Assembly: GCA_025786725.1 (NCBI GenBank) | Contig: JAHLTZ010000002.1 | Span: forward strand, 434,001-498,000 | Reading direction: 5' to 3' | Length of the DNA: 64,000 nt | Source of the DNA: Syncephalis fuscata S228 | Taxonomy: Eukaryota; Fungi; Zoopagomycota | Shown: positions 7,953 through 46,830 of the stretch, in pieces | Layout: every line of letters starts with the position of its first letter | Numbering within the stretch: position 1 is the first letter of the stretch | Position numbers and translations under genes: made by a program | The notes under the pieces: generated by a model | What the model saw: only the letters and a program-made list of their open reading frames with translations | The model's database searches: none | What the model was told of the DNA's origin: nothing

Positions 7953-9028
7953 ATGTCGTTATCTGACTCGTGTACTGGTAAACAGGCACCAATGTGTTGA
8001 CACAACATAAAGCAGATGATAAACCTGCTTATTATTCACTTAAATTTGCCGTCGCACTCTGCTTGGCTGTTATAGCCACAGCATTGTTGGGTCGACTTTA
8101 CTTTCCCATCAATTTATTTGGTGAAGTATGGCGCAGTTTAATGGCTTATTGCCAAGAAATGACGAGATTCTACCCAGCTACGAATGCCAGCATGAAGGCA
8201 GCCTTGAAATGATTAGTTTGGATCCATTTATGTTTCGGATTCATGACTTTCTAAAGCCAGGAGAAGCCGATCATATTATAAGCATTAGGTAAATAAGACT
8301 AGAATGCTATATAAAAGCTTACATAGTTGGCCCATACCTGTTTAGTCGACCATTAATGGAGCGATCTCACGTACAAGCCGACGAGGGAAGCTCCGTTTCT
8401 ACATCAAGAACGTCAACACAAACATTTTTGTCTTTTAATCAGGACAAAGTAGCTGCGTGCATCCTTGTACGTGCAGCACATCTTTTCCAGGTTCCATTGA
8501 CGGATATCGAGTCACTACAGGTAGTTCGCTACACTGCTGGTCAAGAATACCAAAATCATTATGATTTTATGCGAACAGACGAGCAGCTCATGAGCAGTGA
8601 ATGGAGTCGAGCCAAGGGACAACGCTTAGCAACTATGATTATTTATTTACAAGAGCCGTTGGCAGGCGGTAATACAAGCTTTCCATCTCTGGGCCTTAGC
8701 TTTAAGCCTCAGAAAAATGAAGGGTTACTATGGTATAATCTAAACCAGGATGGCCTTGAAGACTGGCGGTAAGTGATACTTGATCATTACTAGCATACTA
8801 CTAAATTTAATATTTGTGGTGTGCTGTAGCATGGACCATCAAGGTGATCCAATCATTGAAGGAGAGAAGTGGGCCATGAATTTATGGCCACATAAAATGA
8901 CCGCGCCAATTGCGGAACGCATTCAAAAGCTTGAAGAGAGCCTTCGTACAACGGGTGCCTCATCAATGGCCGAAACACTGCCTCATCAATCCAATAATGA
9001 AGGTAATAACCATCATATTGAATTGTAA
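7953..9028 (+). CDS. Prolyl 4-hydroxylase-like 2OG-Fe(II) dioxygenase, copy 1 (2 introns), N-terminal TM anchor
   Basis: LQVVRYTAGQEYQNHYD, GQRLATMIIYL, GGNTSF, LWYN, DHQGDPIIEGEKW; C-terminus HIEL; introns ~8289-8345 and ~8769-8829; the 5' part is frameshifted. Confidence 0.85.
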
Positions 9029-9531
9029 TGGTTGCTATGTACTCCTTATCGATTGATTCGAATCGCGATGATTTTGGATCACTAGTTGATTATATTAATT
9101 TGAATGCAACAAAAGGGCGGCGTTTTAAATAAATTATCTATTAAATTGCAAAGATTATTTATTGCTATGTAGCCAGCTACTACATGCCATTAATTAGCTT
9201 TATTGCATGTTTATGGCTTTGCTCGATTGTCGTGTAAGTACAGTTATAATTAACTACGACTCATGTGCTATGTAACAAATCAGTCCGTGTGATTGGCCAA
9301 CATGTGAATCAATAAACGGCAAATCAGCTTAGCTGCATAAAAATACGCTCTTTGAAAGTGACCATTCACGTTCGCACACACATACAAAGAGTGATATAAA
9401 AATAGAACACCCTCCATCCACTAATCGGGACGGAGTAAATAAAAGGCGATTACGCCTTGATTCCACACGTCTTTGCACACATACGCACTTCTTTCGCACA
9501 TTTTATATCAACATTTTATTGTATTGCTAGT

Positions 9532-10739
9532 ATGTCCAACTCGAAAGCGGAAACTGAAGCGACTACAGCCGCGCCTCAACCTGTTGCCCAAGTGGCACCG
9601 GTGGCCCCAGCACCGTCAAAAGGTGTCAGTACTTCTACGCTTTTAGTTTTACTGGTTCTCTCCTCTCTTCTTTCTTCCTCTCTTGGTCCTTTGGTGCAGA
9701 CTGGTCTTCGCCGTGCCGCAGAAGCATATCTGGGCCTTCCAGCGGGCCATTCAAATCAAGCCTTTAATCAACCACAACAGCAACAGCCTAACTATGGATA
9801 TGCTTCTCAGCCTATAATACAAGCACAGCAGTACACAACAACAACAACAACAACAACAGCAGCAGCAGCAACAGCCAGCAACAGCAACAGCAGCAAGCTT
9901 CTTCAGTTAATATAGCTGCTCGTTCTGTTGCGCTAGATCCATCCACTTACGTATGCAAGCACAGCTACTCTATGAATGTAGTCAGCCGTGATCCAACCGT
10001 TATTCTTATCGATGACTTTTTACAGCCAGGTGAAGCAGAGCATATGATTGCTGTCTCATCTCCTAAGATGCAGCGTTCACGTGTATTTGGTGAAAAAGAG
10101 CATTCGGATTCACGTACCAGCAATAGTGCATACTTGTCAAAGGGAATGGATCACGTTATAAAATGTATTGAAGAACGTGCAGCACTGTTCTCCAATATTT
10201 CTGTAGCCGATTCTGAGCCATTGCAGGTCGTTTGGTATACGAAAGGCCAAGAATTCAGACCACACCACGACTACGTCAGCGAAAATGACTTGAAGCATGA
10301 CTATTGGACTCGCTTTGGCCAGCGCTATGTGACTATACTTGTATATTTGAACGAGCCAGATCAAGGAGGAAGCACTATATTCCCCAAGCTTAATCTTGAC
10401 TTGAAACCAAAGAAAAACTCTGCTGTGTTCTGGTACAATGTTGGAATAAACGAGGAAGAGGACGAGCGCACTCTTCACGGCGGCGCACCGGTTCTTGAAG
10501 GTGAAAAGTATGCCATCAACATTTGGCAACGCAAGATGATTCCTCGTGTGACAAAGATTTTGAACGAGAAGGCAGCACAGGAAGCGCAAAAGAATGCTGA
10601 TCCGGAGAAGCGTGTAGAATATGCTCCTAATACTGAGCAGCAACAGACAGCAGAACAGCAACAGCCGGCAGAACAACAACAACCAACAGAACAGCAACAA
10701 CAAGAGGTGCAAAAGCCAAAGAAGATCTTTGAGTTTTAA
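9532..10739 (+). CDS. Prolyl 4-hydroxylase-like, copy 2 (intronless; polyQ stem)
   Basis: TM anchor TLLVLLVLSSLLSSSLGPLVQ; FRPHHDY, GQRYVTILVYLNEP, TLHGGAPVLEGEKY. One frameshift in the CAA/CAG tract at ~9835 joins ORFs 9457 and 9972. Confidence 0.9.
9830..9897 (+). repeat. CAA/CAG polyglutamine microsatellite within P4H copy 2
   Basis: Direct reading of (CAA)n(CAG)n. Confidence 0.9.
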
Positions 10740-13872: not shown

Positions 13873-15449
13873 ATGCGATCATTAACGGCTGTATTATGGC
13901 TGTGTGCCGGCGCGTCTCTGGCTAATGGTGCAACTATCCAGCGCTTTAGTGAAGAGCTAAAGCAGCCACTTGCTATGCCCGCCATCGATACTCTAAATAT
14001 GGCTTCTGAAGAAACTATTTTAAGAATTCCAGAAAATGATCCACGTCTGGTTCATGTTAAGCAACAAATACAGCAGCTAGCCCAACAGCTGCGCAAGGAT
14101 TGGGATACCGCAGAAATGGTCGTCAAAGATTCGAATGGTTTAACTGGCCAGATTGACAAAAATATGTTGCATAACTTCACGAGCCCGAAGAGACACAAAA
14201 AGTTGCCTCCGACATGTTTCCCCACATCTCTGATGCTCTTACCTCCACATTCAAAAAGACGTCGGCTAATGCGATAGCTCAGTTGCGACACTGGATGACC
14301 GGTCTATTCGGCGGCAGCCAAAAGGAGAACAGTGAGCTAACTGCCGCTGCAACACCCACTCAAATGCCTTCATCGGCATCGCCAACAATTATGCCAGCTG
14401 AGGAGATTGTCAACATTGCAACACCAGCTCCTATGGCTACGGATAGCCCAGCATTGGCCGAGACGCAACCGCAACCACAAGTAGAGCCACAGCCAATGGA
14501 CGAGACACAGCCGCAGACGCTAGTAGAGCCGCAGCCACAGACATTAGTAGAGCCGCAGCCACAGACATTAGTAGAGCCACATACACAGACAGAGTTACAG
14601 CCACAGACTCAACCACAGCCATTGGTCGAGCCACACACACATACAGAATCACTACCACAGACGCAGCCACAACCAAAAGCCTCTTCCCGACCAATTACCG
14701 CCGGAGAAACAGTATCCACCGGCCCTATTCAAGATAAAATTTCGTCACAAAAAGCATCAAACTCTGATATTGTAACAAATCCACATTTTAATAGCGGACC
14801 ATCAGAGGGACCGAAAAACACGCATGATCCACAAGAAAATGATAAATTCATATCACTCGAAATTGTCGACGAGGGTACCCATGATGTTGCAAGCGATGAA
14901 GAGCTGCGTAAACATGCCGCAGAAAACGAAAAAATTATCAAAATGGTACACGAAAGCCAGCCTGACCCAATTGTCGAGAGTGTTTTTGGTATTGCCACAC
15001 CGCTTGTGGTTGCCACCGCCAAAATAATAGTGTCTGATTTAGCGCAGCTACTTAGCTATGTCAGCGAGGTTAGAGAACAAGGCATTCCGGCATCCATGTG
15101 GTTCCCACAGGTCCAAAAGATTTTGCTTACTGATATCAACTATAATCTTGTAGCATTGGCCGATTTATCTGCTGCTCTAGTGCGCGAACACATCGTAGCA
15201 ACTGCGTCATTCATTAGCTCCCAAAGAAGTGCCAAAGGCATTTTAATGCGCATGCTTGCCGGCGAAAATGCCGGCGAATATGTAGGCCAAATGGCAGACA
15301 GGTGGATAAAGATATTCATTAAACGCTTACGCAGAACGTTAAAGACTCCGCCGACCAAGAGTAATCTAGCACAAGACAAGGCAGCCCAGGCGCTTGTTCG
15401 TTTGTTGGATGATGTAGACACGCAACACGAGGCAATTGATTCGCTCTAA
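13873..15449 (+). CDS. Secreted helical protein, family member A, with Pro/Gln/Thr/Glu-rich repeat insert
   Basis: Signal MRSLTAVLWLCAGASLANG; intronless; one frameshift at ~14185; (TLVEPQPQ)n repeats; shared C-terminal domain. Confidence 0.75.
14460..14675 (+). repeat. Coding minisatellite (24-bp unit, TLVEPQPQ / ETQPQP)
   Basis: GTAGAGCCGCAGCCACAGACATTA-like units in tandem. Confidence 0.85.
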
Positions 15450-15727
15450 TAGGCATGCCAACTGGAATGCAGGGAGATATAGTTTGTTTTTTATAAACTA
15501 TAAATTTATTCTTAAGTGATGCTTTGTTTATGTAACGTAGCTTTTAACATTATATAAAGTGTTACCAAATGCAGGATATTATTTACTCGTCTATCTCCCT
15601 GCATTCTGTCGTATCAGCTCCCTTTTGCACCCCCTTTATGTAACTATGTTTTTAATAAAACGTACAAATACAAAACATTAGAATATTTTGTTACAATAAT
15701 TTAGCGTTTTATTTATTAAATTTTGCC

Positions 15728-16695
15728 ATGAGATTAACAATATCATTATTATTAGTTGCTTTGTGCATTGGCCTGGTGAACGGCCAACCAGTCATTGATG
15801 CAGACATTGATCTGAAAAGCAGTATGGACTATCGTCCTGAAGATTTTGGTCATACAGCAACTGATGCTATTTCTATTGACATAATCGATTCGATTGAATC
15901 GTCGAACAAGCATGACGACAAGCCCGACTATGATGTAATTGGCGCAAAGCTGAATCTAGGCAACATGCTTCAGGATTTGGGCGAAATTTTTACCAATGAG
16001 GCAATTGAAGCATCGCGCGATTTTGCACGCGAGTTCCCAGAGTCTTTTTCAGACAAAGTTGCAACGACATTGCCATCAGAACTTCGTGTAGGCCATATCA
16101 GCTTCAGGGGGATCCAAAGATCGCTGAAAACAAGCAATGCTACTTGATATTTTTAGCGATCCAGAAAAGCTTCGCAGCTTGCTTAAGCAAGTAGCTAAGC
16201 CGGATGTTGACCGTGAAATGATTGCTATATTGGTTCCATTAAGCAAGGACGCGGCACAAATGCTTATTGGTGATCTTAAAATTGCCGTGAATGCAGCTTC
16301 TAATTCAATTCAGACGACAAGCTTTCAAGCCAGTGGCTTCCTCAATTAAAAGATTCAGCCCGTATAATCTTGAGACGGGACTCTGGCTTTATTTTGAACA
16401 AGATTCAGGAGAAGTTGGAGGAAAAGATCCCCGACTTTATTATTGATAGTCTGGTGATGCACTAGGTGCCGGTATATTCACTAGGCTACTTATCCGTAAT
16501 TTGTTGGGTGATACTATCAAAAAGGAGGTGTCGCAGGATTTGAGTATACTATCCAACGTAATAGTGTCACGATTCGGCAATGTTTTCAACTTGTTCTGGG
16601 ACCGTAGTGTTGAGTCTACAAGCAAACCAGCCATACTGGCTAAAGTCACCAGGGATGACGACCACAACGGCCAAACTTTCCAAATAGACATCTAA
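15728..16695 (+). CDS. Secreted helical protein, family member B
   Basis: Signal MRLTISLLLVALCIGLVNG; ORFs 15728, 16137 and 16501 join through single-base frameshifts; PLSKDAAQMLIGDL...QWLPQL motif. Confidence 0.7.
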
Positions 16696-17009
16696 CTTGT
16701 CATCAATCAGATTTGCTTTAACATTATAATAAATAAACACTTAATAGCACCTATACGATTGGCTACATCCTGAATTAATGTAAATTGGTTATCTTAAATC
16801 TGCAACAAAACATACTCCTTGACTTTTTATTGGTTTAAAATCACGATTCTGCCAGGTTCAAGTAGCCTGCATAGTTTTGATGTAGTATTGTAAAATAAAT
16901 CCGTAACTAGCTATCCCTTTAAATTCTCCTGAATTTATTTAATTACATATGATAGTTATTAGACTATTTCTCATCAATATTGCTGTTTTATTCATATTAT
17001 TCTGACACT

Positions 17010-18274
17010 ATGAAAGTTACTTTGGCTATTTTATTTTTTAGTTTTGCGGTATTTGTTCAGGCAATACCATTAGATAATGATGCATTGCTAGATGATCTAT
17101 TAGGCATGCTATCACTTCCCAAAAATGAACAAACCTTAGTTACATCAGATTCAAGCAATGTCAATGCCGATGCCGATGTCGATATTGAACAATTCGAAGA
17201 TATATTTTTGCAGCCAGACTCTGCTCCCTTAAGACCTACTCTATTATCATCTCTATCTGCTACACGACCATCTTTGTCGACGCCACGTCCGTCGCCAAAA
17301 TCGTTGCCGTCGCCAAAATCACTACCATCACCAAATCACCAAAATCACTACCATCGTCAAAATCATTGCCATCGCCATCCGTTAGTAATTCTAAAGTCTG
17401 ACTATTTATGAGACCATCTCAAAAGAAAACCATCCATTTTCTCCACTGCCACAAAATGTACGCCAGTCCCTTTCCAGCATGTTTATTAAGTTTAATCCAC
17501 CATTCAGCCCTTGTTTAACAATTTAACAAGTCAATTCCAGCAGATTAGAGAAAGTGCTACCAGTTCGTCTGCAGCAATCGCTCAATAATGCCACAAAAGA
17601 ACTTGAAGCACGCACCATTAACAATCGCTTGCAAACAATTCTTAGTCATATAAATACAAATAATAAAGACGAGACTCGTAGAAATGCAGGCCGTTTATTA
17701 AGCAGACTGTCAAAACAAGAAGGCATGGACGATCTGTTGGCTTATACTAAACAAACAATTAATAATTATTTTCAAGATTAAGTAATACACCAATCATGTG
17801 GGCAACTGCGCGTAATCTAAGCGATGATTTGAAAAAGACTGCAAGGACAATTCAGGAGCAAATTCGCCAAGAAGTTCCTGCTGATGAATGGCTACCAAAA
17901 CTACGTCGTAAATTAGCACGAACATTACGGCTTAACACTGGAGCAAGACTAGTTCTTATGCGAAAAGAAATTGACACACAGCTTGAAAGCCGTTTTCTCG
18001 ATAATATTACTAAGCTAGTGCAGTCTAATCCGAAGAAATGCGCATCGTAAACCACTACATGGAGAATATCATTCGTACAACAATTATTCCCAGTTTAGAT
18101 AAAATTGTTACTGGTATGCTGAAAGAGATTAATGAAGCATCAAAAGGCAAAAAAGGCAAAAAAGTGGCCAATAAATCTGTCCCGATAAAGATAGAATGCT
18201 ATAAAGGATGCGACAAAGTAGTACTAGTATTAATGGCTCAATTAAAACACATACAAAATAGCCTGTTTAATTGA
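17010..18274 (+). CDS. Secreted helical protein, family member C, with Ser-Pro (SPKSLP)n repeats
   Basis: Signal MKVTLAILFFSFAVFVQA; ORFs 16980, 17554, 17796 and 18038 join through frameshifts; ATARNLSDDL...EWLPKL motif. Confidence 0.7.
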
Positions 18275-18401
18275 AGTATTAATAAATAAATAACAATTTG
18301 TCAGTTAAATCACTGCTGTTTATTGATAAATATTTGAATGCAATCCTATTAAGACAATAATCCATAAAATGCTTGCCGTGCTGTTTCATAATTGAGACGA
18401 C

Positions 18402-19464
18402 TTAAGCAGCTGGGGCGGCAATTTCTTTCAAGCTGGTAGTTTTGGTCATAATGCTGTTGACCAATTGACTAACTTCAGGAATATTCCAAATGTTGCGTAG
18501 ATGGGCCGAAAGACGATTGATTTGGCTTGTAACCACCTGTGCTATAGCCGTATCGATAACTTCTCCGAACAATGACTTGATCAAAGCGGCGACAGGGCCG
18601 TTAATGTGAAGAGCATACACAATAGTAGCAATGATGACGCCACCAAGATTTTCAACCAAGGTAGTCTTGACAGTGGCAAGCATAGCCAAGGTGTTTTCAC
18701 GCAAGTCCTTGACCACCAAGTCGCGCAATTCCTTCAACCAGACAGATCTTTCGACACGCTTCATGATTGAGCCAGCAATGTGCTTGACGGCATGACTCAA
18801 ATCTTCAACAAGCATGTTCAATGCGCTGATAGCAATTGGACTAATCAATTTGCCAATACGAACAGCCAAATCCACGCCAAACAGCCCTGCGATCATGTCC
18901 TGCAATGATCCATTGACCATTTTGTTAACAAGCTGCTTGATTATTTCAGCAAGAGCAGCTGATGATTCGGCGTTTGTCATTGCCACAGCTGAAGAGCCGG
19001 GCAAGCTAATGGAGCCTTGTCGGCTAAGCTGTGTTTGGTACTTCTTGACAGCTACCGTAAATGGCTACTAAGGCTAGCTGTAAGCTTGGATGGTAGCTCT
19101 TGACCAAGTTGCTGGACACCAGGTACAGCATCGTTCTTAAACTGATTGCGCGCATCTTTAACGACAGAATAAAGACCTGTTGGCGTGGATTTATCGTTAG
19201 CCAGGGCATCAATGGCATCGGGAGCATTCATGTCTTTCGGGGCAAAGCCTTGCCGGGGACGCATATAGGTCACTAGTCGGGTCTGGGCGTTTACAACCTC
19301 AGCGTTGTTCCAGTCTAGGAATGGCTGGCCGCTTGGGTGTTCTGGCATGGTTTTGACTGGAGAATACTGAATGTGGGTGGAGCTTGCGGCTTCATCTCTT
19401 GTGGACTAGCCGTGGCAGCAGTCGCCAATAGCAAAGTAATTGCAATAAATGTAAAGCGTGTCAT
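18402..19464 (-). CDS. Secreted helical protein, family member D
   Basis: Signal MTRFTFIAITLLLATAATA from ATG 19464; joins ORFs 19052-19348 and 18402-19004; PIAISALNMLVEDL...VWLKEL motif. Confidence 0.72.
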
Positions 19465-24274: not shown

Positions 24275-24729
24275 TATGGATTTAGTGTTTTTTAACTTTT
24301 TTTAATTAATTGCACAATGTATTTATAAAACCAAATAGAAAATTAAAAGGTAACCATGGAGCTTTATTATCGTGTGAGCTAAGAATTAGATATATTTATA
24401 GCTAATCATTATAATATTAAAAGATAGGAAAGACGCTTCAATACGTAGATACCATTTTTTGGCTTAGTATACATTGCTTAACTGTTCAATCTAATAGAAA
24501 ACTGCTAAGATTTAATTCATGTAATATCGTATCAATATATATATATATATTAACAATTCAAATAAGCTATGCTAACTGTTACAAAACTGATAATTAATGA
24601 TATTAAATCAGATAGCTTAGCAATAATTTATGATAAACTAAAGTAGATATATTCAAAAAGCTCAAATAATAATACACGTTATAGTTTTCTATAAAAAAAG
24701 CAGAACTTTTGCTATGCTTATTTTATTTT

Positions 24730-31430: not shown

Positions 31431-32466
31431 TTATTCGCGCATTTCAACACTTGATGGGTATTTTTCGTCATTATAATTACCAGTTTGCTCTTCAATATGA
31501 CTATCTTGCTTATACGATTGTATATATGGTAGCATTTTACGCTGCCAAATGTTAATGGCATATTTTTCACCATCCTCAACTGGTGAACCACCATGCATTG
31601 TACGTTCGTCCTCGGCTTCATTATGATCAACGTTATACCAAAATACCGCACCATTTTTCTTTGGCATGACTTCAAAATCTAATTCAGTAAATAAAGTGCC
31701 ACCACCCTCCGTAGGCTCATTGAGATATACAAGAAATGTTGTATATCGCTGGCCAGTTTTAAGCCATTTACTGTTATTGGCATCACCAAATTCTTCAGGA
31801 TACAAATAATCATGATGAGGTCGGAATTCTTGACCTTTCGTATACCATACCACTTGTAATGATTCGGTATTTTCAACAGAAATATTAGTGATTTGCGATG
31901 CACGCTCTTCAATGCATTTTACAATATCATCTTGACTAGCTTTAAATGTGCACTGCTACTTGTACGATCTTCGGAATACTCATCAGGACCAATTACACGG
32001 GAACGGCCCATTATAGGCTTGGCTAGCTCGATTATATGTTCTGCCTCCCCAGGTTGTAGGAAATCTTCAAAGTAAAGAACCATTGGATCACGACTCAATA
32101 TAAATACTTGATAGCCATGTTTACACTCAAATTGACCAATTGATGATTCAGAACGCGCATCAAGCGGCACTGAAGTATTTTGGTGTTGCTCTGCTGTAGA
32201 AATTAAAGCAGCATGTTGTTTCTGATACGTTTGCTGTTGCTGAGAATAAAAATGATCTGCTGCATTTGGTGGCAGGTCAAGATATGCTTCCGCAGCACGC
32301 TTGAGCCCAGTTTGAACCAACGGTCCTAGCGCAGAAGACAAAACCGAAGAAAGCACCACAGAATAATCAATGTAGTGATACTTACACTTCCACCACTCTC
32401 TTGAACAACAACTGATGGTGGTGCCGCAAGTGTTTTTGCATGGCTATGTTTATTAGTATAGGCCAT
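31431..32466 (-). CDS. Prolyl 4-hydroxylase-like, copy 3 (intronless; left arm of palindrome)
   Basis: MAYTNKHSH..., TM anchor, FRPHHDY, TMHGGSPVEDGEKY; two frameshifts. Confidence 0.88.
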
Positions 32467-33841
32467 GTTGAAGACAATATTGGAAATACACTATAGGATT
32501 GAAAAGAGCAAGAACAATATAGTTGGGCTTTGAAAGGGCTTGCGTAGTATGCACATATCAAAACGGATCACGCGGTCAAATAATGCAGCTATACTATAAA
32601 TAGACTGCATGCAACTGGTTGCTTTTAAAACAACTGATAGTAATAAGAACAATGATTTCTTTATATGTATACATTGTAATAAAGCTTTGTCAATTTTTAC
32701 AATTTGTTTGAAATTACAATTGTTAATGATAGAATTAAAGCGTAAAAACTCAGTGTAAAGACTATGATTGGTTAACGGTAAGTTATTTATAGTATAGCTG
32801 CATTATTTAACCGCGTGGTCCGTTTTGATATGTGCATACTACGCAAGCACCTTTCAAAGCCCAACTATATTGTTCTTGCTCTTTTCAATCCTATAGTGTA
32901 TTTCCAATATTGTCTTCAACATGGCCTATACTAATAAACATAGCCATGCAAAAACACTTGCGGCACCACCATCAGTTGTTGTTCAAGAGAGTGGTGGAAG
33001 TGTAAGTATCACTACATTGATTATTCTGCTGGTGCTTTCTTCGGTTTTGTCTTCTGCGCTAGGACCGTTGGTTCAAACTGGGCTCAAGCGTGCTGCGGAA
33101 GCATATCTTGACCTGCCACCAAATGCAGCAGATCATTTTTATTCTCAGCAACAGCAAACGTATCAGAAACAACATGCTGCTTTAATTTCTACAGCAGAGC
33201 AACACCAAAATACTTCAGTGCCGCTTGATGCGCGTTCTGAATCATCAATTGGTCAATTTGAGTGTAAACATGGCTATCAAGTATTCATATTGAGTCGTGA
33301 TCCAATGGTTTTTACTTTGAAGATTTCCTACAACCTGGGGAGGCAGAACATATAATTGAGCTAGCCAAGCCTATAATGGGCCGTTCCCGTGTAATTGGTC
33401 CTGATGAGTATTCCGAAGATCGTACAAGTAGCAGTGCATATTTAAAGCTAGTCAAGACGATATTGTAAAATGCATTGAAGAGCGTGCATCGCAAATCACT
33501 AATATTTCTGTTGAAAATACCGAATCATTACAAGTGGTATGGTATACAAAGGTCAAGAATTCCGACCTCATCATGATTATTTGTATCCTGAAGATTTGGT
33601 GATGCCGACAACAGTAATGGCTTAAAACTGGCCAGCGATATACAACATTTCTTGTATATCTCAATGAGCCTACGGAGGGTGGTGGCACTTTATTTACTGA
33701 ATTAGATTTTGAAGTCATGCCAAAGAAAAATGCCGCTTTATTCTGGTACAATGTCAATTTCAATGAAGTCGAAGATGAACGTACAATGCATGGTGGTTCA
33801 CCAGTTGAGGATGGTGAAAAATATGCCATTAACATTTGGCA
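31543..33841. repeat. Head-to-head inverted duplication, arms ~31543-32602 and ~32784-33841, ~180-bp spacer
   Basis: The reverse-complement match covers the proximal promoter, 5' UTR and most of the CDS. Confidence 0.92.
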
Positions 33842-33964
33842 AAACAAAAAGATACCACGCATAGGATCATATAGACAAGAATATAGCCAAGAATATGGCG
33901 CTGAAAATCAAGCCAACGACTATAATAGCGAAGCATATCCATCAGTAGTGAAATGTACGAGTAA
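32921..33964 (+). CDS. Prolyl 4-hydroxylase-like, copy 4 (intronless; right arm of palindrome)
   Basis: Near-identical to copy 3; several single-base frameshifts; probable end EMYE* at 33964 by homology to copy 3 EMRE*. Confidence 0.82.
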
Positions 33965-34485
33965 TTGTCTTTATCAATGCTATTACCAAATTTGGCACTA
34001 CAGATTATACGTTTCTTTCACACCAAGAATTGTAAATTGTATACCTTATACCATATTCCAAATAGTATTTCTGTATAAGAATATCTATACACTCTAATTC
34101 AGATTTCCACGTACTTATACAGCTTATACTTACTACTCTATTTTTCTAATATCATTATAATTCATCACTTTAACTAACATTATTATTATTTAATTATTCA
34201 ATAAACATTATATTTTACAATAGCTTTTGCAAATATGTTGTAAATGCAACTTTATCAGAAACATTACTACTTTTGGTGTTTCTCAGGCAACTATCCAATC
34301 GTATTCGTTGCATACTAACTCTTTTAAAATGAACCAATCATATAGCACCTATTTTTATCTCAGTATATAGCTGAACACAATTATCCACACCAATAAAGGA
34401 CCATGCTACAGGCCCCTTTTTACACTCAAGTTATTTTATTTCTATTACAGCCTTCTCAAAGATATACGTATTATTGAATACACAA

Positions 34486-35577
34486 ATGGCCCAAATGAAT
34501 GGCAAACACGGCCATGTGGATACAGCCACTACGGCTCAGTCACCTGCACCAGCAGTTGCTCAACAAAGTGGTGGTGTAAGCACTACTACGTTAGTTATTT
34601 TGTTAGTGCTTTCTTCAGTACTTTCTTCGGCACTAGGACCGCTGGTTCAGTCCGGTCTTAAATTTGCTGCAGAGGCATATCTTGGCCTGCCACCTAATGC
34701 AGCGGATCAATTCCGTCTTCAGCAGCAGCCTCCTCAGGAGAAGTTTGCTGCTCCCATTTCTTCAGTGGCGCAGCCGCAAGCCTCCCCAGTGGCACTTAAA
34801 CCACGCGCTGAACCTAACAAAAGTCAATTTGGCTGCAAACACGACTATCAAGCGTTTATACTTAATCGTGACCCGATGGTAATTTATTTAGAAGATTTTC
34901 TACAGCCTGGCGAGGCCGATCATATGATTGAACTCGCTAAGCCCAAAATGATGCGTTCTCGTGTAGTTGGCGAACAAGAGTACTCGGACTCGCGTACAAG
35001 CAGCAGCGCCTACCTTGAGTCCAGCCAAGATAATGTAGTCAAGTGCATTGAAGAGCGCGCCTCATTATTCACCAACATTTCAATGGAGGCCACGGAGCCG
35101 TTGCAAGTTGTCTGGTACACCAAAGGTCAAGAGTTCCGACCTCATCATGACTATTTGGAACGTAAAGATCTCAAGAATGACTACTGGTCTCGTTATGGTC
35201 AACGGTACACTACTTTCCTTGTGTATCTTAATGAGCCTGAACTGGGTGGCGGCACGCTATTCAGCTCATTGGGCTTCGAGCTAGAACCAAGAAAAAATGC
35301 CGCTATCTTCTGGTATAATGTTAATTATAAAGAAACGGAGGATAGTCGTACACTGCACGGCGGTTCACCAGTCGAGGGTGGCGAAAAATACGCCATCAAC
35401 ATTTGGCAGCGTAAGATGTTGCCAGATTTAGCACCATTTATCCAAAATCCCAATGGACAAGACAAAATACACCGCCCAAAGAAGCCCGCAATACGGCGGC
35501 AACTAGTAAATAGCTTTTTAGCTTTATCGCTAATTTTAATAAAAAGTAAATTTAACTACTATCGTTCAAGCTATTAA
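34486..35577 (+). CDS. Prolyl 4-hydroxylase-like, copy 5 (intronless, uninterrupted ORF)
   Basis: TM anchor, FRPHHDY, GQRYTTFLVYLNEP, TLHGGSPVEGGEKY (HxD...H...K facial triad plus 2OG-binding Lys). Confidence 0.93.
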   Translation: MAQMNGKHGHVDTATTAQSPAPAVAQQSGGVSTTTLVILLVLSSVLSSALGPLVQSGLKFAAEAYLGLPPNAADQFRLQQQPPQEKFAAPISSVAQPQASPVALKPRAEPNKSQFGCKHDYQAFILNRDPMVIYLEDFLQPGEADHMIELAKPKMMRSRVVGEQEYSDSRTSSSAYLESSQDNVVKCIEERASLFTNISMEATEPLQVVWYTKGQEFRPHHDYLERKDLKNDYWSRYGQRYTTFLVYLNEPELGGGTLFSSLGFELEPRKNAAIFWYNVNYKETEDSRTLHGGSPVEGGEKYAINIWQRKMLPDLAPFIQNPNGQDKIHRPKKPAIRRQLVNSFLALSLILIKSKFNYYRSSY

Positions 35578-36885
35578 TGTTTGATTTGTGTTACATCAAC
35601 CATTGGTAAAATGGCAATAACAAATTATTACTGTGGTCAGTATTTATTTAAATCAATTTATTAGCAATATTTTAATAGGAATAATATAATTATATTGTGT
35701 ATAACAGTGCGACTTTAATTGGAACGAGTTTTGCTTTAAGAGGCTCAAAATAGGAAAGTCAAAGTGCAATCAAAGTTTTAGTAAAGTAAATAGGGTATGA
35801 CTAATTAACTAATAAATCACTATTTTTAACAATGAACAACTAATGCCTTTACCCATTTACACTGTTGCCATAAATTTAAATAAATTGTATTGCTAAATTC
35901 AGCTTTAATCCAATGCTGTACTGTAGTTTTGATTACAAGTATATCTTTACTATGCTAAAAAATAAAACACATAGTATTAGATCAAACACGCAATCTAAGT
36001 CGAATGCAATAGTATTTAATAATTATATCAAAACATAGTAATTTTTTCAAAAATTACTATTTTTACATCTATGGTACTTTTTAATTTCGTAAGCAAATTG
36101 CCTAAATTTTATATCCGCTAAAAATAGCAGCAACATTGATAATTAACTTATCTTTTTTATTTAAAATGCATTAATAACAATAAATAAGACATTTTTTATT
36201 TATAGGCTAGCATTTTAAAGATATTTTTTTTTATTACTAATGCTGGTTTAGTAAAAGATATAATGGTTTACGATAGAATAGATATACAATGCGAATATAA
36301 TAGGTAGATTAAATAATTTATCATGATAATAAAATATAACAATATAGTATAGTAATTATAATATTTCATATCAATTATATTATCAGCGCGCAATATGTCA
36401 GATCTCCTTAACAAGGCTTAGTATAATAAAGAGATTAAGTAAAATAAAAAAATAGCGAATGTAGTAAAAAGCTAAATACAGTTAATAAAGCTCATTTACT
36501 ACAGAGATGAGCGTGATTATAGAACATACCATTCGTAATAATCGTAGTAACCTCGTGGTTACGCAAAATGATTGTTTTCGTTGTTACATTTTGTCAAATG
36601 ACTAGCTTGTGTTAACAGTTGGTGGTGGCGCAATACTTAGCAAAAATATGAAATATGCATGTAATATTCTAGAAATCCAGACTTGACTCGCATTTGATTG
36701 ACTTAAATAGTGCGCTAATATCGCGGATTATACCCATGTTTATCACCCACCTTTCCTGTCTTACTCTAGCTATTTCTTTTCCGATTACACGGCAAATATC
36801 CTAACGAACACCTACCCTCCTACTTCAACATATCTTTGTGCTATTGAATACTCTTACTCTTGCTTATTTCTATTTTATTAACGTC

Positions 36886-38241
36886 ATGCAACTTACCAGC
36901 CTTTTGGCAGTACTATTTGTACTGCCAGCACTTACCCTTGGTCTACCAAGTCCCCAAGGGCCCAGTAAAGAAGATATTCGCAATGGCAAGCCAGGAGTCA
37001 AGGCCCGATTTGATGGACAGCAAGTCGTCAGCTTAACAGCTGGTGACCGCATTCCTCAAAATGTGTGGGATCAAGTGGAACAGCTTCACCTTGATGTGTG
37101 GAAACAAACCACGACGGAGCTACACGTTCGTGTAGATCCATCCGAGCGCATTGCACTGGCCGCACTGCCCAATGTCAAGTTGACCACCATCGTGGATGAT
37201 GTCCAGAAGCTTATTGACTCAGAAAAAGCCAACAAGAACTCTTTTGCTCCGGAAAAGTACGGCAGTCCAACGTGGTTCAATAACTATCACGAATTGACCG
37301 AGTTAACCAACTGGTATTACGATTTGGCCAAGCAACACTCTGACATTGTAACAACACCAGTTGTTATTGGCAACACAATTGAAAATCGCCCATTACTCAA
37401 ATTCACCATCACCGGCCCCGGAGATGCCAGTGGCCGCAAGCGTATTTGGCTAGAAGCAATGCACATGCACGTGAATGGATTTCGGCCGCTACATTGCAAT
37501 ACTTTGTCGATACTTTGGTAAACAGCTACGCCAAAGGTGACACACGTGTTCGTAATCTATTTCACAAGTTGAATTTGTTATTGTACCTGTCTGCAATCCT
37601 GACGGTTATGTCTTTACCTGGTCATCAAACAGACTATGGCGCAAAAACCGAGAAGGTATACAGAATGGCCGCACCTATGGTGTTGACATCAACCGCAACT
37701 GGCCAGATCACTGGGGTGCTCGAGGAAGCTCAACCAATCCATCGGCAGAAGATTATCGCGGACCATCTGCCGGATCCACGCGTGAAGTCCAAGCATTAAC
37801 TACTGCCTACATCAAAACACCAAATATTGTCAGCGCTGTTGATTTGCACTCTTACTCGCAACTAGTCCTTCGTTCATACGGCTGGACCACTGCTATCCCA
37901 CAAGATGAATCACGTCTTGCTAAAGTTGGTCAACAATTTGCCGACGATATTCGTGCGCAAAGTGGCAAGGAATATACCTCGCAGCGTTCCGTTGAGCTAT
38001 ATGTGACATCGGGAGAAGTGACTGACTGGTGGTATGGCGAAGCTTTGAACCAAAAGAAAAAAGCCGGCGTGCCTGCTCCTCGTCCCTATGCTTTCTGTAT
38101 GAATTACGACCGTCCGATTCTTTTGGCGGCCAAGGCTTTATTCTACCGCCAAGTCAAATAATTCCTACTGGTCAGGAAATTTACGCAGCATTGCTCCACT
38201 TTTCCGAAGAAACATCCAAGAATCCTCTGCCTAATGCTTAA
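36886..38241 (+). CDS. Secreted M14A zinc carboxypeptidase with propeptide (intronless)
   Basis: Signal MQLTSLLAVLFVLPALTLG; HAREWIS, NPDGY, RLWRKNR, GVDINRNW, DLHSYSQ, ELRP; frameshifts. Confidence 0.9.
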
Positions 38242-38751: not shown

Positions 38752-40233
38752 TTAATTATTTTTCTGCTCCCACCAAGCAAAAAAGTTGCACTGGCGTCCT
38801 TGTCGCGAGTAGGCGCCCTTACAACAATAAAAATAGCGGCCAAACGTTTTTTCTTTCCGCGTAACGCTTTTTAATTGGCAGGGCAGATTGCATAAGCAGC
38901 GAGGGATGGTTGCCAGCTGTTGCTCCTGCCGGTAATGGCGGTAAGTAATGTTGATGCGTGTTGAACCGGCCAATGGATGTGGATGAACCGGCGCAGCTGG
39001 CACTTGATGTCGCCATTGTTCTTGCGTCGGCGGGTGCATTAGCAGTAGCGAATTGTGTGGCAAATATACGGAATAGGTTGCAGGCTGATCGCGTGCCAAT
39101 GCATACGATTGTAAACGAAATGGTCGGCCGGCCCCAAGCGACAATGAAGCAATGGTTGGCATTGGCCCAAGATAGGTTAGCTATTAACATGTGCGTACAT
39201 TAATAGGCTGCTAAAATAATACATTAGTTGCTTACCGTATCACTATGCCAATCGACTGATTCTTTTGCAGAAGCATAACAATTGGATGCTGCAACTGAGG
39301 GAAACCATTCTTCATTCGATTCGTGCGAATATCTGTAACAGCTATTAGCTTCTAGAAAATAAAAATAGCAAATAGTATTTGATACCTTTTTCGTGAATTT
39401 AATCGTTTGTTAACACATTTTTGAACCAGTTCAGCTGCTTGGATCATTGATGGAGAAAAAGTAGCGGCTTCTTTTAGCCGTTGTCCACTGTAATAATTCC
39501 AGTCTTGATCCCAATGCTGCTCTTCGGTTTGCTTGGCCAATGGTGTATCTTGTTTGCCTGGGCTGTTATCGTCTTCTTCGCATTCTTTCTTACGCGTCCA
39601 ACTACCTTCTGGATGCACAAAGAATGCGGATGTATGAGGTGAAACTATTTCACGATCAAACAGCCAGCGTCGATTGCGCTTCCAGCCTTGCGAAACAACC
39701 AACATTTCCTTTAGCAATACATTGGCCAGATCTACAGGTAGAAAATCTAGTATTAGCTCGCATGGCGTATGACGTTTAATATCCTCTGGTCGGTACAACT
39801 CTACAGTACGAGTTGGCTGACGTCGTTGTTTGCTTTCCGGTTGATCCACAGATAACCAGCGTAATTTTTCGTGCACACTTGGCAGCCCATCTGTTTTTAT
39901 GGTGTTCGGCGCGTCATTACTTGATGTTTTATTTATTGCATCATTGGATGGGCTACAGAAGGAAGGAAATGCAGGCATTAATCGTTGGCTTTTGTACGTT
40001 TCGCCAGCAGTATATTGATGTAGCGTTACTTGTTTGCGACGAATGGCTTTTTGCTTTATTAGTGGCAGCGTTTTTACAATAATATTGCCATCTAAAAGCA
40101 TCTCAGCTGCTCTATCAACATCTCCTTTAGTGTCTACCAATACTTGACGCAAACGAGCTACCGGCACAGTATCAAAAATCTGTGCCAGTTGTAGCAATGA
40201 CGTGCTATCACTGGATGAATGTTTGCTCGTCAT
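38752..40233 (-). CDS. CUE + AlkB-like 2OG-Fe(II) + GRF zinc-finger protein
   Basis: N-terminal CUE-like LAQIFDTVPVARLRQVLVDTKGDVDRAAEMLL; DWHSD, IASLSLGA, RINITYR; C-terminal CxC...GRYFYCC...CNFFAW. Confidence 0.85.
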
Positions 40234-40392
40234 TTTTAAGAGGAAATAAAAAAGCGTATTAGTAAAACGAACAAAAGTCGAGCAGCCATTTAAAATTCCA
40301 AAAATAGATACGAGAATTATTTATTGTGTGTTCAATTACCGCGTCGAGCGAAAAGGCACAATCAAGAAAAACCATAATGGCGACCAGCACAA

Positions 40393-41235
40393 TTATAGCT
40401 TACTAACTCGAATCCAATCAATATCCATGTTCATTTCCTTGACATCCAACGGTGCCTTGGAGCCGAATCCCGGTTCAACTGCCAAATTGATGATAAGATA
40501 GAATGGCTTGTCGTATGGCCATTCGTATGGCGTGACCGTCGTTGGCGGTGTGTAGCTACCATACATTTTATTGTCTAGCAAGAATTCAGCCCTGCCTTGC
40601 TTCCAAACAACCGAGTAAGTATGCCATTGGCTAGGATCATTACCTTCTGCCCAGAATGACTGAGCATTGTTGCCGTGATACTTGGCAAAATGAAGCGATC
40701 CTGGAGTACGGAACTGTTCGGGCTGGAACTTCTTGCGCCAGATGGATTGATATTCAGCAATGTCAATCTCGCCACTCCATGGCCAAGGGCCATAAGGATC
40801 GCCCTGAGGCATCATCCAAACGGCGGGGAATGCACCGTCAGTAATTGGCATGCGAACACGAACGTCAACACGGCCATAAGTGAAGCTGAACTTGCCACGG
40901 GTCGTAATTTTGCTAGAAGCCCAACGGTCACCGTTAGTGCGTTTGGCAGTAATTCGTAAGTATTTTCCTTCGAAGCCTGGTGTTATGCTGTTGGCATCGT
41001 ACACTTGATGTTCGTCATTGCCCCAGCCACAGATGCCAATATTGCAGCCGTCGCCCAAGTCAAATCCCCAAACATTAGTGTTCAGTGTGTTGGAGTTAAA
41101 ATTGTCTTCAAAAATTACGGAAGATGTAAGGTTTTTAGAACGAGCTGTGGCAGCCATCACCTGCCATGGAGTAGTAATCATGGCCAGAACGGCAGCAGCA
41201 GAAACGCCGAGGCGCCCCAAAGATGTATTTAGCAT
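40393..41235 (-). CDS. Secreted GH16 beta-1,3-glucanase (laminarinase-like), intronless
   Basis: Catalytic EIDIAE, WGNDEHQVY, FPAVWMMP, PYDKPFYLIINLAV; N-terminal signal-like segment. Confidence 0.92.
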   Translation of the reverse strand: MLNTSLGRLGVSAAAVLAMITTPWQVMAATARSKNLTSSVIFEDNFNSNTLNTNVWGFDLGDGCNIGICGWGNDEHQVYDANSITPGFEGKYLRITAKRTNGDRWASSKITTRGKFSFTYGRVDVRVRMPITDGAFPAVWMMPQGDPYGPWPWSGEIDIAEYQSIWRKKFQPEQFRTPGSLHFAKYHGNNAQSFWAEGNDPSQWHTYSVVWKQGRAEFLLDNKMYGSYTPPTTVTPYEWPYDKPFYLIINLAVEPGFGSKAPLDVKEMNMDIDWIRVSKL

Positions 41236-42205: not shown

Positions 42206-43110
42206 ATGCGTGTATATGTTATTTTGGTAACACTGGCACTTGTAGCTGCAATTTCCGAGGTTAATGGAGCTTATGTAAAAAGAGCGACCTAACAAGTAAC
42301 GTCGAAAAAGATGCTGGTGTTACGAAAAAAAGTCCCGTATCTACCAATATCTTTCCAAAAGCCAAAAATCCTGCAGTTCAAGACAATGCCATCATTCGTG
42401 CCAACACTCTGATCGCAATAGATTCATCTGTCAATGAAATTCAAAAATACCTAGACGTCAGACTTTCTCAAATAGCATGGAACGATTTGAAAAAGCCACT
42501 GATGGATTCAATCATTGCTGCTTTGGATACGGAAATTCCAAAGACGATAGAATCAAGCAATCCAGAGCTTGCCAAAACGCTAAAAGGACTTACAAAAGTA
42601 GAAAAAGAGGCTATTGCCCAAGTGACTGCTAGTGCTTTATTGGACTACGTAAAAGCAATTCGCAATGCTTTCAGCGATGCACTTACTAATATTCTTACAA
42701 AGGATATACCGCAGTTGTTTGGCGCTTTACTCCAGGAAGTTCGAACAGGAACTCCAATTAATCGAGCTGTAAAAAAGCTAAAAAATGCACTGATTGCTGC
42801 AGTCCGTCAAGGAGTCAGTATGGCAATCGACAGTATTGAGGCTGCGTTTAACAATCTTGCGCCTGATGGCTTTTTCGATGCTTTAACCAATGCAATCGAA
42901 ACACTGCTTCCGGGTCTGGCCTCTTCCTTCACCTCAGTAGAGGGTGTTCTTCGACCGATTCTTACAAAGATTGTCAGTGGACTAATTGCAAAAGTCTTTG
43001 ATTTAATACGTTCAAACATTGGTGCAGATGTTGCTGATATCGACATAGAAGAAATATTTTCGAATACAGTCCGAATGATTGAGGGATTTAACAAGGGAAT
43101 GCTTCCATAA
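42206..43110 (+). CDS. Secreted helical protein, probable distant member E of the 13.9-19.5 kb family
   Basis: Signal MRVYVILVTLALVAAISEVNG followed by KR; frameshift near 42290; Cys-free amphipathic helices. Confidence 0.65.
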
Positions 43111-43876
43111 CCGTTTTCTGTTTGAGATATTTTGATATATGTTAATGTAATAAAAAACATTACACTTGATTTTTTTGAATCAATTTGCTTATTGATTTTA
43201 ACCTGTAATCAAAACAGCTAACGAATAGTTGGTTTGAGTAAATATAGACATCAAACCAATGCTGTGCACCAGTGCCCTCGAACTCTACATGTGCAAAGTC
43301 TACAAACATGCCTCAGGCATGGTAGCTGCAGAACAGTACCGGTGTCGCATGCATATTGGTTGCAGTAATTGTGACTTGCTCTTGTAATAGCCATTTATAT
43401 TGCTACGGAATATTATTGATACGATAATCCACATGTTGTAACTGCATGCAGGCTGGAAGTCGATGGAAAAAGAAGTTCCAGGGAACTCGAAGGGACCAAT
43501 TGCCTCTATAGGGTGCAAAGGGCTTCATTATCCAACCGCGTAAAATAAACAGACACTAGCTGGACATGCGAATGCTGCATTAGTGTCACCATATATCAGA
43601 GCTTTCCTTTAGCATGCGACAATGATTCCTATGCTTCTACCTGGTGGCGGGCCTGCATTGCCTGCAGCTAATGGCCTATACATACTGTATGTCCATCAGC
43701 AGTTGCTGCGGGCGACCATGTGTTCCACATTCGAAGGATTAATGGATTAAATCAAATCTGTACTACCCAAAATCAGCGGATTTAGTTATATAGATGATTT
43801 GCAGCATTTTATATTCCGTTAACGCATCCATTTTTATTTATTAGCGTTTTGATTTTAAATAGAAAAGTACTATTCA

Positions 43877-44880
43877 ATGATTATTTCATTAAATGCAACC
43901 CGCGGTGGCTATGATACATTGCCGTCTCAAACACCAAGTGTTACCTCGAATCTATCTGATCCAATAATCATAGCATCTGACATAGCGTCGATAGCAGGTC
44001 AACGATCCGATCAACGAGCCCGTTACAGCAGTGACGCGGTCCAATTGCTATTTTTTTGGCTAGCCTTTATTTTATTCAGTCGTAGCTCGTATATTACAGC
44101 TCAGATCACTAGAAAAAATCCAAACTCGATGGTTGGCTGGTGCTTATTTATGCAATCATTGGCCGGTATTCCCCCTAGCTTGTGTCGCATTTTAATGGCT
44201 CTATTTAACCAGCCAGACTGTCTATTTTTTTGTTTGACCGGTGCTGTAGGCCTTTGCATATCCAGTTATGTGTATCTATTATTTTGGCATGGAGAGCCCA
44301 TCTTGTTTATAATCGAAGTGTAGGATTGCTTGTTTTGGGTGGACTATTAATGCTACCCGAGCCATTTTTCGGCATTGCATTCTGGTATAAGACACAAGTT
44401 ATTCAGACAAATCACACATCATGTGAACTGATCTATCCTTCTTGGCTGCCATGGCTCCGCCTGGCCATTGATGTGCCGTTCAACGTGGTTTTCTCGGCAA
44501 TATTTCTTTTCGTCGTGCTACGACAATACCAAAAATATGGCGGCAAAATTTGGAAGCGACTACAGCAGAAAGGATTTATTTGTCTGTTTGCGCTTCTGGC
44601 CACCAATACATTCACGCTGTTGATGACTGGATATCTACTTAAAGAGCATTCAATAATCATTTGGGTGCTAGATTGTGAGTTGCTGCTTTATAGCTATCTT
44701 TCTATTACTGACTGTCTATTTATTCATTTGTAGGGATTATCACCAATCAAATTCTTTTGTTTCAACATCAAGATACAAATCATCCCGATTTACAAGAATT
44801 TAATCGTAAACGATGCCATAAACACAAACGCAACTGCCGTTCAATAAGAAGAGAAGAGGCTATAACACAGCCCATTGATA
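43877..44880 (+). CDS. Multi-pass (about 7 TM, GPCR-like) membrane protein
   Basis: Six to seven hydrophobic segments across ORFs 43877 and 44230 (frameshift at ~44265); extracellular Cys residues; intron ~44675-44733. Confidence 0.6.
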
Positions 44881-45628
44881 CTTTAATCATTGAAATTTAA
44901 ACCATGTAGCATACTAAAGATGGGGATATACATTTATCTAGTCCACTAATCAAGTTTTACAGTTTGCTATTTTCTTAGCAATATTTTGTATAATTGCAAT
45001 TAAATTACAATCAATATCTTGATTTCATTTCAAAATTTAACAACCTTTACAAATTCAATCGCTAAAACTACCAATATGTAAAGATAATTATCTTTATTGT
45101 TAACCAAAATTATTACGTTGTGTCACATGATGATTTAATAGGAAATTATCCATTTAGGTAATAGTTTACAATCTATTGTCTTTTTTATCTTTAAAAAATA
45201 TGTTCAAATAAACACAAACAAACCTTATAAAATGAATTCAACATAGCAAGATTAGAATGATGGCGTATTTTAGTACTGCCGCTCTCCCCCTTATTATCGA
45301 TTGTGCTGTGCCCCTTTTTAGTACATTTAAACGTACAGAATGGTCTGAGCGTACACCATAAAGCATAAAGCGCACGATGCTCTCCTTTTCGGACTGCCCC
45401 TGGTTATGCCAAGGATACTATCGGTTTTGCGGTGACAAAAGTTAAACACCGCCAGTATCCTTGGAGTTGACAACATTGCTGCTCTCCTTTTAGGCGTCAC
45501 TACTGCTCATTGATGGCTGTAGAATACCTTTAAAAACTGCACACCAATGAAAAAGGTATGTTCTTCTGATATATCCTTTATTTTTGTGCAATTTCTACTG
45601 CTTGTTTGGTTACCTTTCTAATTATATC

Positions 45629-46830
45629 ATGGCGCCACACGCTGAAGAGAAACATGTAAAGCAATCGCACCAGGAAGTTCGTTCCAAATCCTATCGCAAC
45701 AAGTCACGTAAAAGTGGCAAATACAGCACAGGCTATGGCGGTGATGTCAGATTTGGTAGTGGCTGGCTGGCGGGTGTAATAGCTGTAGCCGCTGTAGCAA
45801 GTCTGTATTGTGCACCGCTTCTAGATAGCGGACTTCGCTATGCAGCCCGATCTTTCTTGGAACTAAAAGAAGATCCTATACTAAAGATGAATCAAGTACA
45901 GCAGCCTATGGTACAAGAGAAGCAGGAGAAACAGGAGGAGCCCACGGGCTATGTTTGCAAGCATGGATACACTATAAAAATATTAAGTCAAGATCCGTTT
46001 ATTGTTTATCTCAAAGATTTCCTGCAGGAAGGAGAGGCAGAGCATATTAAATCGCTCGCGTAAGTAGACTAGCTTTACTATAAAACTGTAGTGAATTTAC
46101 CATATTTTTTAGAGAGCCATTTCTTTATCGTTCACCAGTAGGACATCAAAACGGCTACTCTGACCATCGCACGTCCTATACAGCATCCTTACATAAAGCT
46201 CAAACAGACATCGTTCGCTGTGTCGAAGAGCGTGCATCACACTTTATCGACACGCCTTGGGAAAGTATCGAATCGCTACAGGTAGTTAGATATGATGTTG
46301 GCCAGCAGTACAAAATACATCGTGATTACATTACAACAGATCAATTGGAGACAGACTACTGGGGCCAATTTGGACAACGATATGCATCTTTTTTATATAT
46401 CTCCAAGAGCCAGAAAGTGGCGGTAATACCACCTTCTACGATGCTGGCATTAGCGTTCCTCCAAAGAAAAATGACGGAGGTAGGATAATGAATCATTTTA
46501 TTGCAATCATTCAATTAACACATAACATTTAGTATTCTGGTTAAACGTAAACGCAGATGGCGAAGAAGATATAAAGTAGGCAAACAAGACTAGCTTTAGC
46601 AGTATGCGCTAACTATTTTATTTACATCTAGAACCAATCATGCTGGAGAACCAGTGCTATCCGGACAGAAATGGGCTATTAACATCTGGCCACACAAGTG
46701 GACGGATCAATTCAGAAAAGTATTCCAATGGAAAGGATGGTCGCAGAGGAGCCGGCACCAAAACGCTACTATGCCACCGATAAAGCCGAGCCCACCTACG
46801 TCGCATAAGCTTCAGCATGTTTGCAATTAG
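45629..46830 (+). CDS. Prolyl 4-hydroxylase-like, copy 6 (3 introns)
   Basis: TM anchor; LQVVRYDVGQQYKIHRDY, GQRYASF, FWLN, TNHAGEPVLSGQKWAINIW; introns ~46060-46112, ~46480-46532, ~46576-46631. Confidence 0.85.

Follow-up and report, generated by a model that had tools for sequence, protein, structure and literature searches.

A cluster of membrane-anchored prolyl 4-hydroxylase genes with a predicted secretory role in the mycoparasite Syncephalis fuscata

Syncephalis fuscata is a fungus that parasitises other fungi, and the 64,000-nucleotide stretch of its genome analysed here (contig C112:434001-498000, hereafter the window) carries six paralogous genes for 2-oxoglutarate (2OG)/Fe(II) prolyl 4-hydroxylases (P4Hs). 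We favour, with moderate confidence, the reading that this locus is an old, tandemly grown family of collagen/plant-type P4Hs that would be anchored in the endoplasmic reticulum (ER) or Golgi and would hydroxylate proline residues of secretory proteins. What the data show directly is the family to which the genes belong, that the catalytic residues are intact, that a membrane anchor is present, that copies 3 and 5 are transcribed and how old the paralogues are. A six-frame search of the window with copy 5, the sole uninterrupted copy (34474-35577), returned exactly six P4H-like loci (Table 1), the same six that an earlier note on this DNA had picked out from its letters. The count of six in 39 kb given in that note is nevertheless too low for the family as a whole. 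A whole-genome search finds two further copies (U1 and U2) on the minus strand at C112:424029-426290, 8-10 kb upstream of the window, and none on other contigs of the 29 Mb genome, a duplicate on contig C219 aside; all eight P4H genes of S. fuscata fall within one 57 kb stretch. Positions 1-9000 of C219, a 10 kb contig, repeat the upstream pair and its surroundings (C112:420756-429853) at 98-99% identity, and because of this 99% identity C219 is probably a second, uncollapsed haplotype or an assembly duplicate. What is new is the local cluster within a known and widespread family, and the original observation is in this sense confirmed and extended.

Catalytic domain, membrane anchor and orientation

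What supports the assignment of these genes as P4Hs? As judged from sequence and predicted structure, the copies are soundly identified as P4Hs whose catalytic domain, of the collagen/plant type, follows a membrane anchor at the N-terminus. Exons of copies 1, 2, 3 and 5 match Pfam PF13640 (InterPro IPR006620) at 36.9-54 bits, with a cut-off of 27; the last exon of copy 4 taken alone reaches 19 bits, and the exon of copy 6 that was tested is the N-terminal one, which does not contain the domain. When copy 5 is compared with solved P4Hs, the best match is the Bacillus anthracis enzyme (E 7e-28, 101 bits), followed by the alpha-2 subunit of human collagen P4H (C-P4H; 9e-26, 94 bits) and the Chlamydomonas enzyme (2e-23, 86 bits), then by the P4H of PBCV-1 (E 1e-11) and, weakly, by human P4H-TM (E 2e-6, 30 bits). 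The Fe(II) triad His-x-Asp...His is kept in all eight copies (H220, D222 and H291 in P0001, the public model of copy 5, invariant in alignment A1), as is a lysine ten residues past the distal histidine within G-E/Q-K-W/Y. In solved P4Hs the lysine at this place binds the C5 carboxylate of 2-oxoglutarate. The retention of HxD...H...K that had been reported for the six window copies is therefore borne out and extends to the two upstream copies.

Structure prediction leads to the same family. Copy 5 was modelled with AlphaFold from 22 relatives; the predicted local distance difference test score (pLDDT) exceeds 90 in the catalytic domain, and residues 33-46 form an N-terminal helix. A Foldseek search with this model returned P4Hs as its first 34 matches (E 5e-18 to 1e-11), with hydroxylases of hypoxia-inducible factor (HIF) appearing only afterwards, and the top match is the Chlamydomonas P4H with its (Ser-Pro)5 substrate (template-modelling (TM) score 0.82 by target, root-mean-square deviation 1.9). 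Protein-language-model features put copy 5 beside plant P4H clusters, which we take as a lead only.

A hydrophobic segment of 19 residues lies near the N-terminus of every one of the eight copies, so that the anchor proposed earlier is upheld throughout the family. Does this anchor place the catalytic domain in the lumen? Of the type II topology suggested in the earlier note, the anchor stands, and a lumen-facing secretory enzyme appears to be the most likely arrangement; the charge rule supports a cytosolic N-terminus in copy 6 and U1 alone, whose basic tails (net +6 and +5) favour that orientation, with the tails of copies 1-5 neutral and that of U2 acidic. All eight copies share two cysteines, Cys117 and Cys187 in P0001 numbering. 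In a set of 87 relatives, the pair is present in 28 of the 35 that have an N-terminal hydrophobic segment versus 7 of the 52 that do not (Fisher p 4e-10), as would be expected of a disulfide formed in an oxidising lumen. Such a segment occurs in 61 of 103 complete close relatives, and some relatives bear signal-peptide-like N-terminal segments in place of the anchor. The ending HIEL of copy 1, which had been read as an HDEL-like ER signal, is real, but its interpretation as a signal is not upheld: isoleucine at position -3 is outside the usual HDEL/KDEL pattern, the sister copy U1 ends in ...QQQVN, and no other copy ends in xxEL.

An alternative hypothesis is that these proteins are P4H-fold 2OG oxygenases with a non-secretory role, acting in oxygen sensing as human P4H-TM does, on a cytosolic target as a bacterial P4H does on EF-Tu, or on a free amino acid or small molecule. 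Bacterial P4Hs score as high as eukaryotic ones, and one solved relative (5v7y) modifies EF-Tu; P4H-TM itself, however, is a much weaker match, at 30 bits. The lumenal orientation is an inference, and the literature searched characterises no member of the fungal clade, yet the anchor and the cysteine pair go together with secretory signals across the relatives, and eight diverged paralogues suit many substrates better than they suit a single sensor. For this reason we regard a non-secretory role as unlikely.

Relatives and age of the paralogues

The relationships among the copies were resolved with a tree built on one 98-residue block that falls within a single exon in every copy, with X entered at the frame breaks of copy 4. 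Copy 6 groups with an unannotated S. plumigaleata copy, 'a' (support 100/98), U2 with a S. pseudoplumigaleata protein (100/99), and copy 2 with proteins of Thamnocephalis and S. pseudoplumigaleata (96/97), whereas U1 pairs with copy 1 (95/89) and copy 3 with copy 4 (99/98). The pairing of paralogue classes with proteins of other Syncephalis species and Thamnocephalis indicates that the family diversified before the species split and that only the palindrome formed by copies 3 and 4 is recent. The eight paralogues would thus form five or six classes, most of them older than the split between Syncephalis species. A full-length gene of S. plumigaleata, likewise without introns, shares 74% identity with copy 5; this species has three P4H copies in tandem adjoining Prp19 and one elsewhere. 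Its third copy is unannotated, contains introns and is the orthologue of copy 6, which likewise adjoins Prp19. The public model of the second S. plumigaleata copy (P0012, 238 aa) is too short, an N-tail and anchor being open in frame upstream of it; these two observations on S. plumigaleata refer to L023:5660-6483 and L023:9596-10000.

The nearest named relatives outside Zoopagales are found in Amoeboaphelidium (an aphelid), Gonapodya (a chytrid) and Sorochytrium (a blastoclad), and the proteins of the latter two have the same layout of tail, anchor and domain. Most of the nearest representatives are metagenome proteins, so taxon labels are sparse. As far as these labels go, the family appears to represent an ancient lineage that early-diverging fungi have in common with their sister group, with no specific link to plants. 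Transfer from bacteria was considered, because a profile search gave mostly Burkholderiales-like proteins after Zoopagales, but that profile contained bacterial sequence. An exhaustive search with a single sequence brings up numerous closer proteins (40-57% identity), of which the named ones are aphelids and chytrids, and rules this origin out; in the tree a bacterial pair joins U1 and copy 1 weakly (85/17) and on long branches.

How do the S. fuscata enzymes compare with P4Hs of known function? P4H-1 of Chlamydomonas reinhardtii and the plant type II P4Hs share with them a monomer-sized catalytic domain of about 200 residues, the fold, the Fe/2OG residues and an N-terminal membrane anchor followed by a linker. 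Although the algal enzyme ranks first by structure, it does so by a small margin, and at about 30% identity these proteins are no closer in sequence than bacterial or human P4Hs. The architecture had been put forward as specifically that of plant and algal enzymes, which does not hold, since bacterial, human and algal scores are about equal and the closest relatives with a name belong to early fungi and aphelids. The catalytic domain also resembles that of human C-P4H-II (7zsc; 94 bits, TM 0.71), which acts in the ER lumen. In contrast to the animal C-P4H alpha subunit, the fungal proteins lack N-terminal domains for dimerisation or peptide-substrate binding and do not have the architecture of a soluble tetramer; each is a single-domain protein anchored in the membrane, and the collagen-like genes here are few and short. 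The P4Hs of B. anthracis and other bacteria give the top sequence score and are of comparable size, but they have no anchor and mostly no cysteine pair, and they are cytosolic or periplasmic with other targets. Human P4H-TM combines an ER membrane anchor with a lumenal P4H domain; it is nonetheless a weak match in structure as well (TM 0.44-0.49), and its EF-hand region is missing from the fungal proteins. The P4Hs of Gonapodya, Sorochytrium, Amoeboaphelidium and other Zoopagales are alike in being the nearest named relatives, and what sets S. fuscata apart from them is the gathering of all eight genes, a recent palindrome included, in 57 kb.

P4Hs as such are not a novelty in fungi. Such homologues already carry the name 'prolyl 4-hydroxylase' at the Joint Genome Institute (JGI), and according to a survey most non-metazoan eukaryotic proteomes contain the P4H domain (bioRxiv 10.1101/2021.10.08.463732). 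That preprint also refers to a previous account of endogenous collagen P4H activity in fungi. In the literature that we searched, no paper characterising a native fungal secretory P4H was found.

Among the metagenome proteins, P0135 (1194 aa) has tandem P4H domains fused into a single polypeptide, with five P4H-like stretches in all, a layout seen in nine cluster members from several sources.

Table 1 Features of the window (positions are those of the window)
Feature	Position	Strand	Remarks
P4H copy 1	7953..9028	+	Anchor; motifs H-Y-D, H, K; C-terminal HIEL; sister to U1
P4H copy 2	9532..10739	+	Class in common with Thamnocephalis
P4H copy 3	31431..32466	-	Palindrome arm; intronless, transcribed; assembly short one base at 31941 and at 32358
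Spacer between divergent start codons of copies 3 and 4	32467..32920		Outer parts are an inverted repeat (pairs I5, I7; arm alignment)
P4H copy 4	32921..33964	+	Second palindrome arm
P4H copy 5	34486..35506	+	Intronless, transcribed; true C-terminus ...PQYGGN, not the 367-residue frame of the assembly
P4H copy 6	45629..46830	+	Basic N-tail (net +6), anchor, three introns, frame break near 46390
Four genes for secreted, mostly helical proteins	13873..19348		No Pfam family; three with clear signal peptides; substrates proposed earlier
Gln/Pro-rich repeat, first secreted protein	14455..14675	+	About 3.5 units of 24-nt QPQTLVEP unit and variants
SPKSLP repeat, third secreted protein	17313..17377	+	About 2.4 units of 18-nt unit
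Prp19	48345-49328		Adjoins copy 6
Missing-base sites	31941, 32358, 34461, 34567, 35461, 35485
Further probable missing-base sites	about 8130, 9840-9900, 14176-14213, 17313-17377, 46390

Secreted neighbours and the substrate question

Which proteins would such enzymes modify? The earlier note had proposed that the P4H genes and the adjacent cluster of secreted, helical, proline-rich proteins are a linked enzyme-substrate system, in which hydroxylation of the SPKSLP and QPQ repeats would yield adhesins, wall proteins or effectors. The repeats in two of these neighbours are real. They are also short, at about 3.5 and 2.4 units, although the protein repeat of the SPKSLP gene is probably longer than in the assembly, because the DNA repeat runs on in another frame. 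The helical family is tiny in S. fuscata, where a genome search finds the window cluster and one further member on contig C101, and the enzyme with the closest solved structure acts on Ser-Pro peptides. A search for homologues of the first secreted protein, made with its C-terminal domain, returned that protein alone, and an open reading frame near copy 6 (42487-43110, also helical) has no detectable similarity to the family.

In favour of a linked system, the P4H gene of Thamnocephalis is directly followed by two secreted relatives of the helical family (E 5e-13 and 2e-4), one of them with a Ser/Pro/Lys-rich stretch behind its signal peptide. However, the unrelated EVE and AAA genes that stand beside copy 1 in S. 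fuscata are kept in the same Thamnocephalis block, and inherited gene order is therefore sufficient to explain the adjacency. Moreover, the P4H genes of S. plumigaleata and Piptocephalis have no member of the helical family within 10 kb, proline-rich repeats occur in just two of the four neighbours, and secreted proteins much richer in proline are encoded on other contigs. The linkage of enzyme and substrate, resting on an adjacency that belongs to a wider conserved block, is not shown by these data, and we consider it quite doubtful.

Secreted proline-rich proteins encoded elsewhere in the genome could serve as substrates. One secreted protein (L028; G000:C315:70670-73834, minus strand) has a long Thr/Pro repeat (TEPPTTPP / TVQPP), a Cys-rich segment and a His/Gly-rich tail. 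As a candidate target of proline hydroxylation it is far richer than the window neighbours. A second (L032; G000:C133:2325-5480, minus strand) combines (IPGIPA)n and (KPH)n with a short collagen-like (GQPGTP)5, which puts proline before glycine as in animal P4H sites. Collagen as a substrate class was examined and set aside: PF01391 gives seven weak matches, of which L032 alone has a convincing short Gly-x-Pro run, the remaining matches being Gly/Ala/Val or His-rich repeats.

In plants, hydroxyproline is glycosylated by GT31 galactosyltransferases and GT77 arabinosyltransferases. A six-frame search of the S. fuscata genome gave no match to GT31 (PF01762) or GT77 (PF03407), a search in which exon-split genes can be missed and for which bacterial control genomes gave no positive control. 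The analogy with plant O-glycosylation drawn in the earlier note therefore finds no support, and a plant-like arabinogalactan/extensin pathway is not indicated if hydroxyproline is made. This is a further difference from the plant P4Hs, as is the failure to identify substrates of the extensin or arabinogalactan-protein type.

The region holds many other secreted proteins. Between copy 5 and a GH16 glucanase gene stands a gene for a secreted M14 zinc carboxypeptidase (36838-38161, plus strand), with signal peptide and propeptide, spread over three frames. P4H genes have the GH16 gene and an AlkB-like/GRF zinc-finger gene in their vicinity both in S. fuscata (38752-41235, minus strand) and in Piptocephalis (L024:8722-13669). 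The presence of the GH16 gene near P4H in both genomes marks it as an old resident of this neighbourhood and argues against a recent transfer into S. fuscata.

Expression, missing bases and the function of the cluster

A fundamental question is whether these genes are expressed and intact, given that copies 1, 2, 3, 4 and 6 are not single open frames in the assembly. X1, the sole public run containing this DNA, was typed as RNA by guess, and its reads were mapped to copies 3-5. The resulting contigs lie exactly on the bodies of copy 3 (depth about 1000) and copy 5 (about 500), with a depth of about 3 on one short piece of spacer (32533-32660) and none on the remaining spacers. Depth confined to the bodies of these two genes is a pattern that fits RNA and not DNA; copies 3 and 5 are transcribed. 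Because the contigs are colinear with the genome and contain no joints, both genes are intronless. One contig of 1072 nt, colinear with 31438-32507, carries both bases that copy 3 lacks in the assembly, and with these restored copy 3 is one open frame of 345 codons, anchor included, which rules out its reading as a pseudogene. The contigs over copy 5 (34364-35529) contain extra bases behind 35461 and 35485 and six additional nucleotides behind 34567, and the corrected tail, which replaces a hydrophobic one, is nearly the same in residues as the end of the S. plumigaleata orthologue.

Where transcript contigs permit a check, the assembly lacks about one single base per 300-500 nt, and several of the frame breaks are missing single bases and not introns. 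The same deficiency accounts for the anchor-less public models of copies 1 and 3: P0149 (copy 1) begins past the frame break near 8130, and P0003 (copy 3) spans both missing-base sites by two false introns. P0008 (copy 4) is an incomplete model interrupted by internal gaps, and P0001 has the wrong C-terminus. In copy 2 the frame changes within an (ACA)n(GCA)n run at about 9840-9900 where no GT..AG is present, which makes a missing base likelier than an intron, and copy 2 is probably intronless. The frame break of copy 6, which falls between adjacent codons, is probably an assembly error of the same kind as that of copy 2. Copies 1, 6, U1 and U2 were handled exon by exon. Copy 1 has two canonical GT-AG introns (8289-8345 and 8769-8829) that are also present in P0149, and joining it to the ATG at 7953 needs a 35-nt GT..AG gap (7978-8012) that is a candidate only; copies 6, U1 and U2 are interrupted at matching places. 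Missing bases of this kind corrupt public models and bear on any secretome or topology prediction from this genome, and other findings on it that depend on frames or tiny introns need the same caution.

The two arms of the palindrome, copies 3 and 4, are 96-100% identical over the 5' 900 nt and about 85-89% identical over the 3' part, and since the outer parts of the spacer between them belong to the inverted repeat, they probably share promoter sequence. Copy 4 has four single bases fewer than copy 3, one more is missing from both, and its own 3' part is not covered by any X1 contig. Over 85 codons of this diverged 3' part the ratio of non-synonymous to synonymous substitution rates (dN/dS) between the copies is 0.24, which argues against copy 4 being long dead. 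That the frame breaks are real mutations throughout, leaving copy 5 and perhaps copy 3 functional in a partly dead cluster, is improbable despite the broken frames of five assembly copies and the five bases wanting in copy 4, because all four breaks that transcripts can check (two in copy 3, two in copy 5) are bases missing from the assembly, the corrected tail of copy 5 is conserved in another species, and the catalytic residues are all kept.

Returning to the predicted secretory P4H family, several points weigh against it. The positive-inside rule gives no clear orientation for copies 1-5, and the tail of U2 is acidic. The association of the cysteine pair with the anchor is confounded by relatedness, eukaryotic and bacterial sequences having been mixed. 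The classification of X1 as RNA is a guess, and the run says nothing on copies 1, 2, 4 and 6; copy 4 may be broken. Finally, P4H activity and hydroxyproline are predictions for S. fuscata.

The secretory P4H family nevertheless remains the reading we prefer, and proline hydroxylation with secretory substrates is what the sequences suggest. An N-terminal signal anchor would fix each P4H in the ER/Golgi membrane, and the Fe(II)/2-oxoglutarate catalytic domain would face the lumen and convert particular prolines of secretory proteins in transit to 4-hydroxyproline. Since most of the paralogue classes are older than the Syncephalis species split, the paralogues have probably specialised on different substrates or conditions of expression. 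Tandem and inverted duplication in a conserved gene neighbourhood, and not a co-adapted enzyme-substrate cassette, would account for the clustering.

The role of fungal P4H homologues, and of hydroxyproline on fungal secreted proteins, is a largely unstudied field, to which this locus offers an entry point: eight candidate enzymes encoded close together in one organism, two or more of which are expressed, and concrete peptide motifs. A broader and decidedly tentative hypothesis is that zoopagalean mycoparasites run a diversified system of lumenal proline hydroxylation, in which five or more ancient P4H classes with separate substrates place 4-hydroxyproline on secreted proteins or peptides that serve to attack host fungi. 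The targets might then include the adjacent helical proteins as well as the proline-rich proteins of other contigs, without plant-type glycosylation. If true, such a diversified lumenal system would be the first defined hydroxyproline-protein pathway in fungi.

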